A stretch of DNA of 63,973 nucleotides, the filler included, from Lenisia limosa (lineage: Eukaryota > Protista > Breviatea), in assembly GCA_001655205.1 (NCBI GenBank). It is 12 parts of 12 records of this genome, joined end to end, with 100 filler letters (N's around TTAATTAATTAA, not from the genome) between each part and the next. Parts side by side here need not be neighbours in the genome. Positions count along the whole stretch, not along the records: positions 29,362 to 50,444 come from LPNZ01010942.1; 11 more parts are not named here. One strand, written 5' to 3'. A program made the position numbers and the translations under genes. The first letter of the stretch is position 1. Each line of letters begins with the position of its first letter. Shown here piece after piece: positions 33,160-50,400 of the stretch. Below the pieces are notes generated by a model, which was given only the letters and a program-made list of their open reading frames with translations, was not told the DNA's origin and did no database searches.

Positions 33160-36100
33160 ATGAACAAGATAGGAATGTTTGTCTTCTTCCATGCTACAGC
33201 GCTCTTCCTTTCGCTCTTTTTCCCTGTTTCAATGGGCAAATGTCCGTTCGCCAACCTCATCAACAGCAGCGACCCTCATTCCATGTTCCACTCTCCTACC
33301 AGTCCCTCTCCCAACCATTTTGGGTCTGATATCGTGTCTGGAACCGCGAGGACGGTATGTGCAGGAAGGAGCTTTTAGTAACCGTATGATAAACATGAGA
33401 TTTGAGAGGGTAAGTCATTTACGTGAGCTTGAGCATTTGGGGGTCTTTTTACAGCCAAGGTGAAGGACTTGGCGGAGCAGCGGAAGCAGTTGAGAGACCA
33501 GAGCAACTTGATTTGGCACCATGAGGAGATAGAAAGGTTTGCACTGAGGTTCCTCAAGATCAACGACAGTATTTTATTGTTAGCTCGGAGTAGAGAGCAA
33601 ACAGGGATTTCGTTCTACTTTATTGTCCTCGTTTCTCTAAATGAACTTCAATCAATTTGAGTGGTTGTGGTTTATTTGGCTTTATAGATCCACTAATGGA
33701 CCTTGAAAGAATCCAAAATAGCCATCAGAATCATAACAATTCAAAAGTAATTAACGTTACATCTATCCAGCATAGTCAGTCCTTTTATTTCCCAGTTGGT
33801 ACACGCTGTCTTGGGCTCTGGATGAGGAATGGCTCATGATCGAAGTCATTGCTGAAGCTGAGGGCTATATCGGCTTTGGAATTGGTGACGTCATGATGCA
33901 GTGTGCGGGGTGTTATTCAAAGGTAGAATGTTGGTAGCACTTTGTAGAGGAAGGGCTTTGTTTTTTCTCACCCGTCAGTAATTTGGATCTTGCAATGTGC
34001 ATGTTCCCCCCACGAGCTGATGGTACGACTTGTGTATTTTTGTTGGTATTCTTGTTTCTCATTATTATGTTCAGTCATATTCTAGAATAATAATTCAAAC
34101 CGCATTCAGCTGCTGATAATCTTTATTTGTAGCATTCTGCCTTGACGGATGGGTGGATGGCATGGAATTTGGCGTGTCCGATGTTGTCCTTGGAGGCTCG
34201 GATAATATACGAAACTGTTCCGCGTATGGGGGGGGGGGGATGNNNNNNNNNNNNNNNNNNNNNNNNNNNNNNNNNNNNNNNNNNNNNNNNNNNNNNNNNN
34301 CACAACCAAATTGTATGTTCACTCTTCAGTGCGGCGGATGATAAGTTGCTAATGTGCTCTTTCCGCCGCCCTATTGAGGCCTTTGATAAGTACGACCAGG
34401 TTTGTGGTGGGGGGACGCAAAAAGTTGTTGTTTAAAAGATAATAATTTGTCTAACACCCGACAGCCAGTCAATGTTGATAGTCCAACCAAGGTGTCATAC
34501 GCCATCGGAGGATTTGGCGAACAACACGGCTGTTTCGACCGAGGAATAGTTGACGTGGGCGGATACTATTTTAGCTTTTGTTTTTGTATTATGACGACAA
34601 TGACAAAATGACCTTTAGAGCGATGTAAACCATTTAGATCAATTTTGGTGGAGACCACCCCGGTATTGATACTCATTCTTCGCTTTTACTTAGGAAGATT
34701 GCTATCACACTACACGGGTATGTTGCTGCAAGTTATTTTGCCCAAAAATGAATACTGTATACCCTATTAAGTATTTGCTTCTTTTGCTGCATCGTGTTTC
34801 AATATATTGGATCTCACAACGGTAACCCATCTTTTGGGAAAACTGAACCTGAAAAAAGTTTTCAGCTCTGACTAGGACAGCCAAAACATTGATTGAAACT
34901 CACCCAGAAATCACTTTCCGAAGCAATCTTTTTTCTTCTCACAACTTAGAACGGTTATGATTGCCACATGGGGCCTTTTCCTTTTACTTGGTGTTTATTC
35001 TGCTCGATTTGCGCGGCATACAACCTGGGGGTGTGAGGGTTATCTCTGAAATTTACAAAGTCTGTCGCGTTGAACTATTTGTAGAACAGTCAAATACGGT
35101 CATAATATGTAATCTGACACTTCAGGATCACTCTGCATAAGAACATCCAAGCCATTATGACGTTTGGCACTCTCCCAATTACCGTAGTGATGGCTGTTAT
35201 TCAAGTAGGGGAGGGGAATCGAAGATGTCAATATTCTTGCTTTTTTGGCACAAATTAATGTAATGGTATTTGTGTTACTCGTTTAGGAGAGAATGGGTCT
35301 TAGCTCGTCCACTCATGCTATTTTTGGTTACACCACGCTGATTATTTCGTGGACTGTTGGTATGCTGGCTGACTGGTTATGTCGCCTGTTGATATGCTGG
35401 CTGACTGGTTATGTCATGGACCTGGCTGACTGGGGGAAGATACAGTAATTGGTTGTACCAGCATTGTCTCTTCAGTTTACAGGATCCAAATGTGGATGCT
35501 ACTAACTTCTTAAGGATTCGGAGGCACCCTCTTGTCATTTTCCAAAAAAGCCAAAATTGCGGACATGATTTCTGAAGAGGTTTGTGTTTACCATCCGTGG
35601 GGTATCCAACTTTGCTGTCAAAGGGTCTCTCATCATTTTTTAGAAAGAGTTACCCCTGAAAAAAGGCATCAAAGTCAAGCTCGGGTGGGTTCCCAGCTTA
35701 TCTGATCTTCTCACACCCACAATAGTCGTGCTGTGTCAGGCAGACATGCAACACTGCGGATGTTCCATCGCTACGGTGGCGCTTCAGTCATGATCCTTGC
35801 TTTTGTCACTATTTATTTTGGCATCAGAGTGGGGGAGGGGTCACTACTTTGGTATACCCAGGAATATTGAACTTGTAGTAGTGTGTTTGAGTTCCACTTA
35901 TGTGTCTTACCTCCTAGCACTGTCCAGATAACGTGTACCTCCAGTTACCTTGGTTGATGTGGGTAGTAGCCATCGTCGTTTGCTTCATGCTAGCCGAACT
36001 ACAGAGGAAATCGTTGGTGAAGGGTCTAAGGCTTGAGAGGGTGATTCTCATTTCAATAGATACCTTGCTTTTCCCATTATGTGTGGACACAGTGAATCTA

Positions 36101-39100
36101 CTAATAACATGGTCCTTGACCCTTTTAGGTATCGTGGTTACCAAGCTGCTGACCCCTCAAAATCTATATCCGACCACTCTTCTGCTTTAACTGTGCCTTC
36201 CTTCAACTCAACCACACATCCCAACTTATTCGGTCTGAGGAGTCTTGGCTGAGGGTATTCATTGATACTACAATTCAAATAAATAAAAACATATATATAT
36301 GTACATAACAAAAAAACATACGTCTGATGATTGGTTGTGTTTCTGATTCAAAACTATAGAACACCTGGGGGTATCAACGGCCAAATTCAATCGTCAAGCT
36401 GGGGAGTTCCTGGAATCGAACATTCTTGAAGCAACATTGGTAGGCGTGATTGATATTGAACAATAGATGATGGAGAAGACTGGTTACAAAATGATACATA
36501 TGAGATCATTTTTTTGCAGTTCCTCAAATCGTTCATACATTTCCATTTACAATCGGAATGAACTTACCCTGTAGTTATCAGCAGGCATCAAGAGGTTTTT
36601 GGTGGAAGTGCCACTGGAAAGAGGGGCGATCAAGGTTGTTCCTGGACAGCATTTCCTGATACGGTAAATGGGCTTGCTTCTGCGTCTCAATGAATTAATC
36701 GCTCTTAATGCTCTTACGGGTTGTCTCAGAGTGGGAGAAGAAGGCAAAATGGCTGTAAGACCGTACTCAGTGCGGAGTATCGATGCCGGCACCAAGCTTG
36801 AGTTCTTCATCAAGGTTGGTTTGAGAAATGTTTTGCAAGTGCTTCCGAACCAGATCGGCCTGATTCAGAAAGATGTACTGATAAACAGTCTGAGTGCTAG
36901 TATATCATATGTAAAGCTATAACCACAGCATAATAATATTGCATTATCTTTGCCTTATTTCCCCTAATACCTGAACTCAACAAATAGAATGTACCTGGTG
37001 GAGAAGTCTCACCCCAAATCTTTAATAAAGAGCCCAGTGACACCATTCAAATTGCAGGTGGGTGGGTGCAATAGTATCCTTTGTTCGACTTTGAAGAGCA
37101 TTTGCTCTTAATATTTCTTGCTGGTTCCTATTCCGTCCTTTAACGAAAGCAATGACACTATTTAGGTCCGCATGGACTTCCACCTTTCATTGATATCACA
37201 ACCAGCAAGTCATTCTGTGAGTCGAGACATTTCATACTAAAAGACTTATACAAAGGATGGGTGCAGCTATCATACGATCAATCTGATATCCTCAATAAGC
37301 TATGTATTTGGGCAAATACAACTTGAATCCATTTCAATAAAAGCTATCAACCACAATCAGAATGGATGTTTTTGACAGTCATAGGCTTCATAGGTGGCGG
37401 TACAGGCATGGTACCCCTGATATATTTGATTGAAACCTTGGTGAAAATGATGAAGAACGAAGGGTACTCGCAGAATGAGGGTGTTACACTCTCTGCCGCG
37501 GACTTTGACTTCACCTCCAGTTCGGGTGTTCTGCTACCTGCTTCGGTTACTACTCCAAGAATGTAGGCATATCTTACTTGAGATGTGGAGTAAGACTTGA
37601 AAACTATCGATAATTATTAAGAATTTATCAAAAGTTTTTCACTCTTTATGGCAACGCGTAACAGCCCCTTCAGAATTCAGATCAGAAGAGTACCCAAAAG
37701 GACAAAATTTCTCTTTACATTCTTTTTAGAATCGATATTTGCTCTTTTTTCTGGAGTAAAGCCTGATTTATTGATTAGATCGCCAGACCTCACACCATCC
37801 GCAGTCCCTCTCCTCAATGGACAAGTAGGTGACTTTCTTCTTTTAAAATAGAACCATTCACAGTCTTGTTTTTAAGATGATACTTCTTCTTATTAATGTT
37901 TTTAGCGCGCTGAACCTTTGTATTTAGACAGTGAAAAAAGTTTGAAGGATATTGGTGTTTCAATTATCCTTTACCTTTAGCTTTTTTATTTACTTCTTTT
38001 GGGCTACTATTAGCCTTTCACTCCCTAGAAGCGGAGTTTGAGATAACTATTAACTACATTTGTCGGACCCGTGCAGATATGGTTATGCTCCCCATGCTAT
38101 ATGAGGTTGTTAAGACTGCGGGTCCTAAAATCAACATACACCTCCATCAGATCATCTCACAGGTATGTGGGTTGTTTTCCATTCGTCTTTGATCTTCAGC
38201 AAGCAATATGACATTCACTTGACAGGTTCCACGCTTCTCTTCCGCTCGTCCTTCTGTCCACACACTCATTTCCAATGTGGGGGGGGGNNNNNNNNNNNNN
38301 NNNNNNNNNNNNNNNNNNNNNNNNNNNNNNNNNNNNNNNNNNNNNNNNNNNNNNNNNNNNNTAGGTGAAAATTATTACACTATATTAATGATCAATGTTT
38401 GTTCTCTTGATATTGGTGATGATTACGTTGTTATGATCAAAGGTTCGTTCTATTGATATTGGTGATGATTACATTGTTATGATCAACGTTTGTTCTATTG
38501 ATATTGGTGATGATTACGTTGTTATGATCAATGTTTGTTCTATTGATATTGGTGATGATTACGTTGTTATTCGATATTATGTAAGATTTACAGTGACCGG
38601 GATAAGTCTTGACCGATTTTCATTGGGAAATTACATTGCAAATCGGCCAAGACTTATCCTGTTCACTGTACAAAAAAATAGAGAAGCAGCCCTTGAGATA
38701 GTTCATATCCTTTAATAGCGCAGATCGACTCCCTCCCGTCGTCTACGTACTTCCTGGTGGGAGGGCTTGGCTGAAGTGCAATGGATACTTCGAACTCATA
38801 CAAGTAGAGAATAGGGAATAATGATACACGTAAAAGGACAGTATGGAGGACTTACATGGTGAAGGCCTATTTACCGTCCAGATCTGTGGCCCACCTGCAA
38901 TGGAACTCGGACTCATGGCTGAACTTGCTTTATTAGGGTTTGTTTTTCTTTTTAAATTGTTTTTGAAGAAGCATTTGCCACTATTTAGATGACGTTTTGT
39001 GCACGGAATGTAATTAATTATGATTCCACACTCTGATTGCTTAGTTTTAACGTCCATCTTCTTGACGAGTCCACTTTGCCAACAAAAAGCCCAGTAGGGA

Positions 39101-39924
39101 GTTTCACTAGTGAATCTGCACTTACTTTAATATTAGGAGGCCCAAGAAAAACCTTGCTCCATTACGACGCCCGCCTCCATGGATAAGTCAAAAAGTCGCC
39201 CAGGCTACTCCATGGAGCAAATTCGAGATTCAGTGAGTGGGGGTTGCGTTGTTTTGTTGATTAATTCAATGTCTCACATTTATATAATGAAAGCCTTTTC
39301 ATGCATTTTTACCGGTTTAGAAGGGGCTACTAATTGCGATCAACGGTCTTGTCTACGACCTTCAGTCATTTTCAGCCACCCATCCAGGCGGGGAAGGTGG
39401 GAAGTCACTTCAGCGAGGGCGTTAACTTCTCACCTGTTAGATATTCTTGAGGCCTACAAAGGACAGGATGCAACCGCTGCGTTTGCATCTGTTGGTCACT
39501 CTCAGGTTTGTGGATTTTGGGTTTTTTTCCTTACTTTGATTGTGTAGCACGCTATAATGCTAATGGAGCGCTATTGTGTCGGTATCCTAATGTAGTCTTT
39601 TATCCGATAAGGCGATGTTTTTTTCCAATGTGATATGATGTTTTGATACGAATTGGGCTGACTTAGTACTGTATGTTAGACCTGTGGGTTGGTGCACCTT
39701 GTAATTCCTTCATTTTGTCAGTCTTGCACAATCCAGAGTCGATCAGTGAGATCAATTGGTCACGGTGCTGAATTTTTTCAAAAGTAAGTAATTAGAATAG
39801 AATTGATTACTCTGATAGTTTGGATGGTCGACCCCAGGTGGCGGCTCAATCAGTCATCCACCCAGAAACCCAAAGAGATAAACCCAAATCATCAAATCAT
39901 TGCTTGGAGGCACATGGGCATTGA
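33160..39924 (+). CDS. Signal peptide-DOMON-cytochrome b561-FAD/NAD(P)H reductase (b5 reductase type)-cytochrome b5 fusion protein
   Basis: DOMON: YTLSWALDEEWLMIEVIAEAEGYIGFGIG, CSFRRPIEAFDKYD, VSYAIGGFGEQHGCFDRG. b561: THAIFGYTTL, MFHRYGGASVMILAFVTIYFGI. FAD: VPGQHFLIR, RPYSVRS. NAD: GGGTGMVP, CGPPAM. b5: INGLVYDLQSFSATHPGG, GQDATAAFASVGHSQHAIMLMERYCVGIL. Confidence 0.8.
38388..38569 (+). repeat. 45-bp intronic minisatellite x4
   Basis: Unit atgatcaatgtttgttctattgatattggtgatgattacgttgtt, head-to-tail with no spacers. Confidence 0.95.
38591..38668. mobile_element. ~78-bp Tc1/mariner-type MITE family C (TA-CAGTGACCGGGATAAGTCTTGACC…CACTG-TA)
   Basis: Inverted-repeat hairpin with CAGTG ends and TA flanks. 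Other copies at 5368-5440, 52031-52111 and 61419-61478. Confidence 0.85.
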
Positions 39925-40153
39925 TTACATTACATTGATAAGGCCACTCTCTACCTCACAGCGATCCAAACAGACTTCTTCCCTGAAGGCCCAAAATCCG
40001 TAACAGCTGAGAATGCGTATGGATACTCTGCGAAATAAAAGTACGATTTACTATTTGATATGTTTATTGTTGGAAACATAAATGGAACTGATGCAGAACC
40101 ACAAACACCCACCTGTGGAAGACAGTGTAATAGATTTTGAAGTGTAATACGCC

Positions 40154-47579: not shown

Positions 47580-50400
47580 TTAGTGGTGTCGGCCGTGGTG
47601 GTCGTTGACCATTTTCGGCGGTGTCAGGGTCTTGCAGTCCTCACGGGGGTGCAGTGGCTCCTCCGGCCACTGCAATACCATAGTTGACTCGTCAAATGTT
47701 CGTGAAGTGGAAATCGTCTGGAGCATGAGAGGTTCTTGTTAAAGTGAAATGTAGATGTTACCACGGGTGTATCAGAACTTTATTGAAATGAGAAATCAAT
47801 ATTATAGTTCAACGAAGTTTCGCCCCTTACCATGTTTGCGAACTTGAGATCGTCATACTAAATCGTTACGAAATACACAGAACACAAAAAGGGAACTGGA
47901 TGAAACAACAAACTGAACTGAACCAGACCCACGATTTGTTCAGTTACGTGCAGGCCAGTGCGGCCGACATTTCGCACTCTTGACAGACGAGGGTGCAGGA
48001 AACGTCCAGGTAGTAGTTCCCAGCGGATCATCCAGTGTACACATACGTCCCACCCTGAGGGTGTGAGTTCATTTTCAGCCTTCTTAGTTGTTGAATATGC
48101 TTACCATCATCACATTCGAAGAAGAGCTGAATGTTTCGTTTGATACTCTCGTACATTTCTCTGAAGAGGGGTAAAGGCAGGTTGTCATTTTTATTAAAAT
48201 GCTAAAGAGTTTAGACTACCACTGTAATACACCATCAGTAACTATGCCTTTCACAGAAAATTGAGGAAAGTGCGTACCGTCGGTAGAAAAACCCGGTGTT
48301 GTATAGGCCCCACCGCGCCTCCATAATATGCGGCTTCTGGTTCCTGCTTGGTGAGTGCCAAGTAACAAGGTTGAACAAGGACATCGACCATGGGGTAACA
48401 CCCCCACTGACAGTTCGAATGACCACAGGCAGCCCCCCCAGAAGTCCTTTTTTGTTTCAGCCGGAAACTCGTCAATTGTTTTCTCCAGCGCGGATCGGAC
48501 CTATCGCGTTAACCATATGGCGGCTGTTTGGAGGGGGTTTGATTGATTGTAAAAAGACAACCCTTTTAGAAGTACCCATATAGCATTGAAGGGACCCACG
48601 AGTAGGAAGTCAGGAGCCAACAAATGGTCCTCTTCTATGAACGTGATGTACCCGTCATAGTTCGGGTAGATTACTTCATACACCTCGCTCAGAAGCCACC
48701 TGGGGAATGAGGGAAAGTAATTAACACCCAGGAGCCCGTAATATTTCAGCACTTAGTACAAAATGAGCTAAATACAGCTAAGTGCTGAAATGTTACGGGC
48801 TCCAGAGGAAGTTGCAACCCAACACCTCACTTACCACCAGTGTTCCTTCAGTCCAAGGCCACGATAGAATCGGCTCGGATGAATGAGTTGACGATACTGT
48901 CAGGGTAAAACAAACGCCTACGATACAGACAAAAACCGATGTCAAGTCACCCACTTCTACGTCTTGTATGATTGATGTCTTTTTTGAAAAACTCAAAAGA
49001 GTCTTCCACAACCCTCTTCTTGTTTTGCTATGTCTGATTTTTAATTCTGTCACCAAATATTACAATTATGCATGTATACAATGGAATTATATGATATGTA
49101 CATACAGAGTATGATACTCTCCCTCCAACAGGCATAAAATCAATGGTTTGGGCCACATCATCCATTTCTGGAGACAAGCCGTCATGGGATATGATTAGTT
49201 CCGTTTTGTTGATACCGACGACATTGCGTAAACCGTTGAGTACACTCTAGAGGGTATAAAACAAGATTGATTGTATTGGCTGAACTATGAAAAAACAAAA
49301 CAAAGACCGTCAGTTCAAGAAAGATGAAACATGAGCAGAAAACTGTCTTACTTTGAAGTAAAGCGGACGATTGTAGACGTACAAGACAATTGGGCCTATT
49401 GATGGGTCTCTGACAAACTTCTCGCTGTTGATGAAGTGGGCTCTTCGGTTTGCGAATCTTGACAGCCCCTTAATAATAAATCAATGCTGCTCATTTGGCT
49501 GATTTTTTAAATCAAAGGATGGGCGGAGGGAATACTGAAGAAAAAGGCCGCGATGCTGAGGCACTGGAAGCTGTATCAAAAGGCTGGAGTTTCGCCAAAT
49601 ACAACAGCCTCCTCCCTACCTCAACTTCTAATAAATACAATGGCCTCCTCCCTACCGCAACTTCTAATAAATACAATGGCCTCCTCCCTACCTCAACTTC
49701 TAATAAATACTGGCTGTCAATTGTCTAGATGATCAGAACAGCATACTCAGGAGGAGACTTACCTTCGTGAGCCCTTCACACTGCTTCTCCAAATTCAACT
49801 CCACCTGTACAGTCAGGGAATTGGAAAAGGACCGTTTTTGTTCAGTAATCTAGTCAGTTTTTGTGTCTGACATTGCCTTCATCTGTACACAGCTTTCTTT
49901 GCACCTTCCTCATATGATACACTCTAACTTGAAAACCCTCCCCAACCGTTTTTGAGGAACTCTCAGATTTTTGTGATGTTTCGTGAATCTAAAGTGATAC
50001 ATTGGTAACAAGCAAAATGTCAAAAAAAAAAAAAAAAAAANNNNNNNNNNNNNNNNNNNNNNNNNNNNNNNNNNNNNNNNNNNNNNNNNNNNNNNNNNNN
50101 NNNNNNCAGCTAACATCAATAAGATTTCATTCCCACCTCCTTCACTTGCGACAGCTGATTGATGATAATGGGGATGACAACCACATTGAAGCAGAGGAGA
50201 ATGATGAAGGCATACCTACGGAATAAACAGCAAACTCAAAGAAGCGCTTAGAAGATAATAATCATTATTTCGACAATATTACCAAGCATACTGCAAGAGA
50301 CTCATAGTAAGAACTTGTCAGTTAATGGGGCTCTTAGGAACCCTGCTGTGTAAGCAGCTACACGCACTTCTTCGCTAAGGCCCACCGCGCTACCGTTGCT
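47580..50400 (-). CDS. GT16/MGAT2-like glycosyltransferase, copy 2, 5' truncated by scaffold end
   Basis: Minus-strand exons: FVRDPSIGPIVLYVYNRPLYFK; YRQLIHPSRFYRGLGLKEHWW; YDGYITFIEEDHLLAPDFLL; GWDVCVHWMIRWELLPGRFLHPRLSRVRNVGRTGLHV; ending PREDCKTLTPPKMVNDHHGRHH*. Each pairs with a copy-1 exon. Confidence 0.82.
48731..48803. mobile_element. 73-bp hairpin (ggagcccgtaatatttcagcactta…taagtgctgaaatgttacgggctcc) in an intron of GT16 copy 2
   Basis: Near-perfect 25-bp inverted repeat; only one copy in the window. Confidence 0.6.
49597..49709 (+). repeat. 36-bp tandem repeat x3
   Basis: Unit aaatacaatggcctcctccctacctcaacttctaat. Confidence 0.92.

Follow-up and report, generated by a model that had tools for sequence, protein, structure and literature searches.

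Can a single polypeptide take up electrons from reduced nicotinamide adenine dinucleotide (phosphate), or NAD(P)H, in the cytosol and deliver them through a cytochrome b561-type membrane core to a haem on the outside of the cell? Eukaryotic trans-plasma-membrane electron transport is ascribed to two designs: the NOX/FRE enzymes, which have a built-in NAD(P)H-flavin module, and the b561/CYBDOM proteins, which draw on cytosolic ascorbate. The question is raised by a gene of the breviate Lenisia limosa (GenBank assembly GCA_001655205.1), which lies on the plus strand at positions 33160 to 40003 of the window, as we call the whole stretch of 63,973 nucleotides (nt) that was analyzed. The piece concerned, 29362-50444 (LPNZ01010942.1), is eukaryotic nuclear DNA; its G+C content is 41%, its introns are short and of the GT-AG type, and it contains nine runs of N. 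All gene features described below are on the plus strand unless stated otherwise. Our results indicated that the gene and the fusion that it encodes are real at the levels of DNA and spliced RNA, and that its product of about 907 residues is probably a self-sufficient trans-membrane reductase. The predicted order of parts is a signal peptide, a DOMON domain, a b561 core, a linker, a flavin adenine dinucleotide (FAD) and NAD(P)H module, a second linker, and cytochrome b5.

The whole coding model (33160..40003) comprises 32 exons (2724 nt, 907 codons) and 31 GT-AG introns of 41 to 447 nt. It was started from stop-free stretches and hand-chosen GT-AG sites and then refined by RNA joints. Fifteen introns are GT..AG joints in polyA-RNA contigs of run X1; for sites without RNA, the choice was made on reading phase and on the scores of splice-site matrices derived from the gene's 25 supported sites. 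Once the exons were joined in a script, a single frame of 907 codons was obtained, free of internal stops and ending with TAA at 40001-40003. This joined model was used in scripts for frame continuity, hydropathy, and motif positions, while homology and family searches were conducted at the exon level. The sequences used for comparison were L001, a gap-free contig of ENA assembly ERZ3820729, together with a polyA metatranscriptomic RNA run (X1) and a DNA run (X2), two runs of one 2016 study that both hold the locus.

Two RNA contigs carry the fusion. The first (contig 3, 482 nt) runs from 35683 through 35725-35828, 35918-36012, 36129-36231, and 36359-36438 to 36574 with the frame open, and it links exons 12 to 17, that is, b561 helices 4 and 5, a linker, and the first two FAD exons. 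The linker is exon 15 (36129..36232), a Ser/Pro-rich and presumably cytosolic segment between helix 5 and the flavin module; its presence in RNA ruled out a direct splice from helix 5 to the FAD exon, which had been considered as a candidate. The second (contig 5, 412 nt) runs from 38276 through 38724-38755, 38881-38936, 39044-39093, 39137-39232, and 39321-39394 to 39439 and links exons 24 to 30, leading from the CGPPAM exon through the linker of exon 28 (39137..39232) into the b5 exons with HPGG. By region, the RNA joints lie within the b561 core (34716/34949, 35029/35125, 35204/35287, 35683/35725, and 35828/35918), in the FAD half (36438/36574, with contig 4 covering part of exons 16 to 20), in the NAD half (38276/38724, 38755/38881, 38936/39044, and 39093/39137, with RNA also covering 37385-37545), and at the b5 domain (39232/39321 and 39394/39439). 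An earlier note on this DNA had proposed that all of these parts belong to one chain, and the proposal is supported here: spliced RNA crosses from b561 to FAD in an open frame and from NAD to b5, and the spliced form has no stop between the b561 and the FAD exons.

A distinctive feature of the gene is its predicted cytosolic part, which includes a putative flavin reductase module. The FAD-binding half of an FNR-type reductase is encoded by exons 16 to 20 (36360-36439, 36575-36663, 36730-36814, 36988-37057, and 37166-37216), in which we located PGQHF (as VPGQHF, 36638-36655), RPYSVRS (36758-36778, residue 511), GGEVS (residue 533), and GPHG. The NAD(P)H-binding half follows in exons 21 to 24 (37385-37562, 37779-37828, 38029-38162, and 38226-38276) and exons 25 to 27 (38724-38756, 38882-38937, and 39045-39093), partly covered by RNA; it carries GGGTGMVP (37393-37416, residue 573), CGPPAM (38885-38902, residue 720), and a low-complexity insert of ~50 residues. 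Several frame-keeping paths exist between 37545 and 38029, of which the one with the best-scoring sites was chosen; the donor of exon 21 and exons 22 and 23 were selected by phase and splice score, without RNA. Members of the FNR superfamily of the b5-reductase type show the ordered motifs RxY(S/T), GxxS/T, GxGxxP, and CGxxxM, and here RxYS, GGxxS, GxGxxP, and CGPPxM are all present, in that order.

The module was further compared with a home-made hidden Markov model (HMM) of six Escherichia coli FNR-family proteins (Hmp, Fre, Hcr, YeaX, Fpr, and PaaE), against which the exons were scored separately. Six of the seven flavin-module exons matched the HMM in genomic order, each weakly (≤2.8 bits), at profile positions 19-39, 45-69, and 75-82 for the FAD half and 111-134, 136-167, and 208-214 for the NAD half. 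As a control, seven six-frame segments were drawn at random 200,000 times from the piece outside the gene: 0.7% of the draws were equally colinear, and none of the 200,000 was equal in both colinearity and summed score. A PDB sequence search with five exons yielded nothing relevant, and the GGGTG exon found no usable match in the ESM Atlas. This evidence is indirect but consistent, and it points to an FNR/b5-reductase-type module for FAD and NAD(P)H.

The cytochrome b5 domain is encoded by exons 29 to 31 (39321-39396, 39441-39505, and 39722-39783). Exon 29 alone matched Pfam Cyt-b5 (PF00173) with 27.3 bits against a cut-off of 23.7 (profile 14-36), and exon 30 matched it with 18.4 bits (profile 39-57). 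Both haem histidines are present, in THPGGE (39378-39395) and VGHSQ (39491-39505), and the domain is solidly predicted to be a cytochrome b5. Exon 31 was deduced from the frame, a GTAAGT donor, and an IG motif, and it encodes the last b5 helix. Exon 32 (39838-40003, with the TAA stop), beyond the reach of the RNA contigs, and an AATAAA 3′ of the stop (40034-40039) were read from sequence only. The motifs listed in the earlier note were all recovered on the plus strand and in the order given there. The gene end that it placed at 39924 did not hold up as well: a stop is reached there only if the exon at 39722-39783 is skipped, and since the skipped exon encodes the last b5 helix, 40003 is the more likely 3′ end.

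The side of the membrane on which this module lies was deduced from topology. ATG 33160, the first ATG after an in-frame stop, opens exons 1 and 2 (33160-33354 and 33460-33536), which encode a signal-peptide-like start and a spacer; their splice choice keeps the phase and scores best with the gene's own matrices. The hydrophobic core of the start covers residues 4 to 22, with a hydropathy peak of 1.88. Five more peaks lie within residues 222 to 408, encoded by exons 7 to 10 (34638-34717, 34950-35030, 35126-35204, and 35287-35359) and 11 to 14 (35515-35579, 35644-35684, 35726-35828, and 35918-36012), and membrane-like segments elsewhere are Rossmann strands only. A 32-nt unit repeated 1.9 times (96% matches, 35354-35415) begins in the last 6 nt of exon 10 and extends into the next intron. 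Lys and Arg number 16 in the predicted inside loops versus 1 in the outside loops. This charge bias, together with the signal-peptide-like start and the five helices, places the DOMON-like domain outside and the reductase and b5 in the cytosol, so that the C terminus is predicted to be on the side where NAD(P)H is. In the membrane itself, the earlier note had counted two histidine-containing exons; we found four, each with a candidate ligand histidine (His230, His262, His294, and His358, one on each of helices 1 to 4). On helices 1 and 3, His230 and His294 sit close to the outer end, whereas His262 and His358, on helices 2 and 4, sit close to the inner end.

With the exon structure, splicing, open frame, b5 domain, motifs, helix count, and charge bias demonstrated, we infer cofactor binding, an electron path, and an acceptor from the known roles of the parts. 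Electrons would pass from NAD(P)H to FAD and from FAD to the b5 haem on its flexible linker; they would then enter the cytosolic-side b561 haem (His262/His358), cross to the outer b561 haem (His230/His294), and leave by way of a DOMON haem to an extracellular acceptor such as a ferric chelate. The position of b5 after the reductase, on a linker of ~45 residues, would allow it to shuttle between FAD and the inner haem. An NAD(P)H input of its own to an extracellular haem is therefore a plausible property of this protein, in keeping with the predicted topology and the intact cofactor motifs. The reductase and b5 might instead be real but not feed the b561 haems; the membrane part would then be an anchor, and the electrons would go to cytosolic partners, for example desaturases. 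Alternatively, the flavin module might be catalytically dead. In favor of these readings, divergence keeps the flavin exons from matching Pfam or PDB sequences, and the NAD domain has a long insert. We consider them unlikely: the four cofactor motifs are all intact, as are the two b5 histidines, and the module is predicted to lie on the cytosolic face, adjoining the inner haem site.

It was then asked whether the locus gives two products, with the main mRNA ending early to yield an ascorbate-type DOMON-b561 protein and the fused form being a minor variant that makes little protein. Reading on in frame past an unused exon 15 donor leads to a stop at 36250-36252, and an AATAAA signal found by inspection of the intron (36278..36283) follows that stop by 26 nt; the RNA contig depth is low (~7). 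The sole RNA contig at the exon 15/16 junction is, however, spliced from 36231 to 36359 and continues in frame into the FAD exons, and no ATG-started frame was found for exon 16, the first FAD exon, in a frame scan. These data make the two-product explanation quite unlikely. As for a polyadenylation site between b561 and FAD, which the earlier note had named as a sign of two genes, spliced RNA runs through the region, and an AATAAA does occur in the intron after exon 15.

The identity of the outer and membrane domains was examined by family searches. Exons 3 to 6 (33796-33884, 34133-34223, 34330-34399, and 34465-34554) encode a DOMON-like extracellular domain; as in CYBDOM proteins, it follows the signal peptide and precedes the helices. 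Its match to Pfam DOMON comes from exon 3 alone (E value, 0.33; 11.6 bits against a cut-off of 32.7; profile 5-36 of 124), so that the DOMON named in the earlier note agrees in position and is weakly suggested by the profile; it is the weakest of our domain calls. Met131 (in DGMEFG) and His195 (in GEQHGC) are candidate DOMON haem ligands assigned by position, and an RNA contig covers exon 4 of the domain. For the membrane part, the pairing of histidines between helices 1 and 3 and between helices 2 and 4, compared by position, is that reported for the CYBDOM protein CRR. In the ESM Atlas, the ten best named matches of exon 13 all belonged to PF03188 or its clan with a score of 0.81; a match counts as more than a lead at the 0.9 level, and the rows for this exon also include Ytp1 and DUF4079. 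Pfam Ferric_reduct had no match on single exons. The indirect evidence suggests a cytochrome b561 core of five helices that contains two haem sites of the bis-His kind.

The same data were weighed against the possibility that the membrane part is another five-helix domain of the clan (DUF2427/Ytp1-like) and that the N-terminal domain is not DOMON, in which case there would be no trans-membrane wire. The Atlas score below its 0.9 level, the Ytp1 and DUF4079 rows, the b561 profile unmatched on each exon, and the DOMON E value would all fit such an arrangement. The four histidines nevertheless stand at the depths and in the pairing expected of two bis-His haems, and the only Pfam match on these exons is to DOMON, near the start of its profile and between the signal peptide and the helices. 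We regard this arrangement as improbable.

An assembly chimera, in which unrelated loci were fused at N runs, is exceedingly improbable: two N runs do fall within the gene, but L001 and the X2 contig are gap-free over both and identical to their flanks, spliced RNA crosses the second, and the joint between b561 and FAD is distant from both. Gap 1 (34243..34300) lies inside the intron between exons 4 and 5 (34224-34329) and has a true size of 24 nt (L001 4910-4933), and gap 2 (38288..38361) lies inside the intron 38277-38723 with a true size of 53 nt (L001 8921-8973). L001 is free of N and matches every gap flank at 100% identity, the X2 DNA contig agrees with it on both sizes, and the whole locus is present on two gap-free DNA contigs. 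The end of exon 4 at 34223, in front of a GTATGG donor, is seen in RNA, and the model places the start of exon 5 at 34330; a 208-nt RNA contig has exon 4 in its center and flanks of 24 nt and 92 nt, which exon 3, exon 5, and part of exon 6 would account for. At gap 2, the RNA is spliced from 38276 to 38724.

The surroundings of the two gaps showed further features. Both N runs begin directly after a run of 10 to 13 G (34232-34242 and 38277-38287) that is real sequence in L001, and the scaffold gaps seem to be located at poly-G tracts that the original assembler failed to cross. The intron before exon 25 contains a 45-nt tandem repeat (38388-38570; four copies, 92% matches), which gives a spurious open frame of 78 to 92 residues, and an 82-nt palindromic element resembling a miniature inverted-repeat transposable element (38589-38670), whose 37-nt arms are 86% complementary. 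The depth of the X2 DNA contig rises from ~38 to ~16,000 in the 200-nt bin 38590-38789 that contains this element, indicating a very high-copy repeat of this genome.

Several observations weigh against a self-sufficient trans-membrane reductase. The DOMON match reaches an E value of only 0.33, and neither b561 (PF03188; exons of 24 to 41 residues each) nor FAD_binding_6 nor NAD_binding_1 of Pfam was matched on any single exon. Exon-by-exon Pfam searches yielded only Cyt-b5 and the weak DOMON; the exons, 17 to 59 residues long, are too short for the other families. Long inserts in the loop between helices 3 and 4 and in the NAD domain were not seen in the relatives compared. The X1 RNA run is small, the mRNA is not covered from end to end by any single contig, and exons 1 and 2 (outside the RNA-compared stretch), 22 and 23, and 31 and 32 are without RNA support. 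The intronic AATAAA at 36278 could give a short isoform with DOMON and b561 only, a possibility that the spliced contig leaves in place, since contigs cannot exhibit the absence of a short form. Finally, the exon-level searches found no homologue that would show conservation of the fusion. A phmmer search with the 44-residue exon 23 against 1.84 billion representatives gave two matches and no true homologue, a word search with the stop-free stretch around exon 21 returned only the window's own open reading frame, and metagenome scans produced nothing with a spliced-junction 24-mer and 600 pattern matches, none of them confirmed, with the exon 21 peptide. These blank searches say little, as the queries were only 44 to 79 residues long and the word search is length-limited. 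The two phmmer matches were rejected as spurious, both being bacterial repeat proteins in which score piles up (Pfam SprB and others).

We then compared the gene with known systems. A b5 domain and a b5-reductase-type reductase with CGPPxM occur in one chain in NCB5OR (CYB5R4) and in the haem-flavin part of nitrate reductase. These proteins are soluble and have b5 before the reductase (b5-CS-b5 reductase in NCB5OR), whereas here b5 follows the reductase, the pair is tied to a membrane cytochrome with five helices, and no CS-like segment was found in the model. The outer two thirds of the predicted design are those of CYBDOM proteins such as Arabidopsis CRR and mouse SDR2/FRRS1: a signal peptide, an extracellular DOMON at the N terminus, five helices whose four histidines pair 1+3 and 2+4 (220-289 and 256-325 in CRR), and the C terminus inside; the donor of the CYBDOM proteins is ascorbate (PMC10784552). 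Known CYBDOM proteins end after helix 5, while the gene here adds an NAD(P)H-FAD reductase followed by a b5, ~500 residues in all; its loop between helices 3 and 4 is ~30 residues longer, and the proposed electron source is NAD(P)H instead of cytosolic ascorbate.

The single-chain logic is shared with eFRE-DOMON of Naegleria, Albugo, and Phytophthora, in which a membrane domain with two haems shares one chain with an outer DOMON and with an FAD/NAD(P)H module in the cytosol (PMC3591440). There, however, the membrane domain is a ferric reductase domain of six helices, two of which bear two histidines each, the flavin module is of the NOX type, and b5 is lacking, while the protein here has histidines on four helices and the FAD motif RPYS instead of the HPFT type of the ferric reductases (FRE/NOX). 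In the demosponge DspNOX, a b561-like five-helix block is fused with an NAD(P)H-flavin oxidoreductase (PMC9524095), showing that such blocks can be joined to NAD(P)H oxidoreductases; DspNOX is, though, a NOX that has EF hands, a PAS domain, and a ferric reductase domain of its own, without DOMON, b5, or a b5-reductase-type module. In cellobiose dehydrogenase, a flavin dehydrogenase passes electrons to extracellular acceptors through a Met/His cytochrome of the DOMON type (cited in PMC10784552); the enzyme is fully secreted, has no membrane wire, and obtains its electrons from sugar oxidation by a GMC flavoenzyme. A full-text literature search found no description of DOMON-b561 fused to a b5 reductase and b5.

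On the minus strand, a neighboring gene (48504-49246) contains two stop-free stretches that match Pfam MGAT2 at profile positions 43-81 and 145-180. MGAT2 is N-acetylglucosaminyltransferase II, and the matches imply that the host makes complex N-glycans.

Taken together, the protein is probably a variant of the CYBDOM kind, with a function that we infer from its parts. It is possible, and we put this forward only tentatively, that no CYBDOM driven by NAD(P)H has been described before this one, and that it is a trans-membrane reductase with four haems and one flavin in a single chain, evolved separately from NOX/FRE. A CYBDOM equipped with an NAD(P)H-FAD-b5 input would link the NOX/FRE and the b561/CYBDOM designs, and it would represent a convergent assembly of a self-sufficient membrane reductase that works like FRE/NOX and is built of CYBDOM, b5 reductase, and b5 parts. 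Its compactness would also make it a candidate for the reduction of iron or copper outside the cell, or for redox reactions at the surface. If this holds true, the natural fusion would count as evidence that b561-type cytochromes can be supplied with electrons by b5 reductase and b5, a source that has not been considered for this ascorbate-dependent family.

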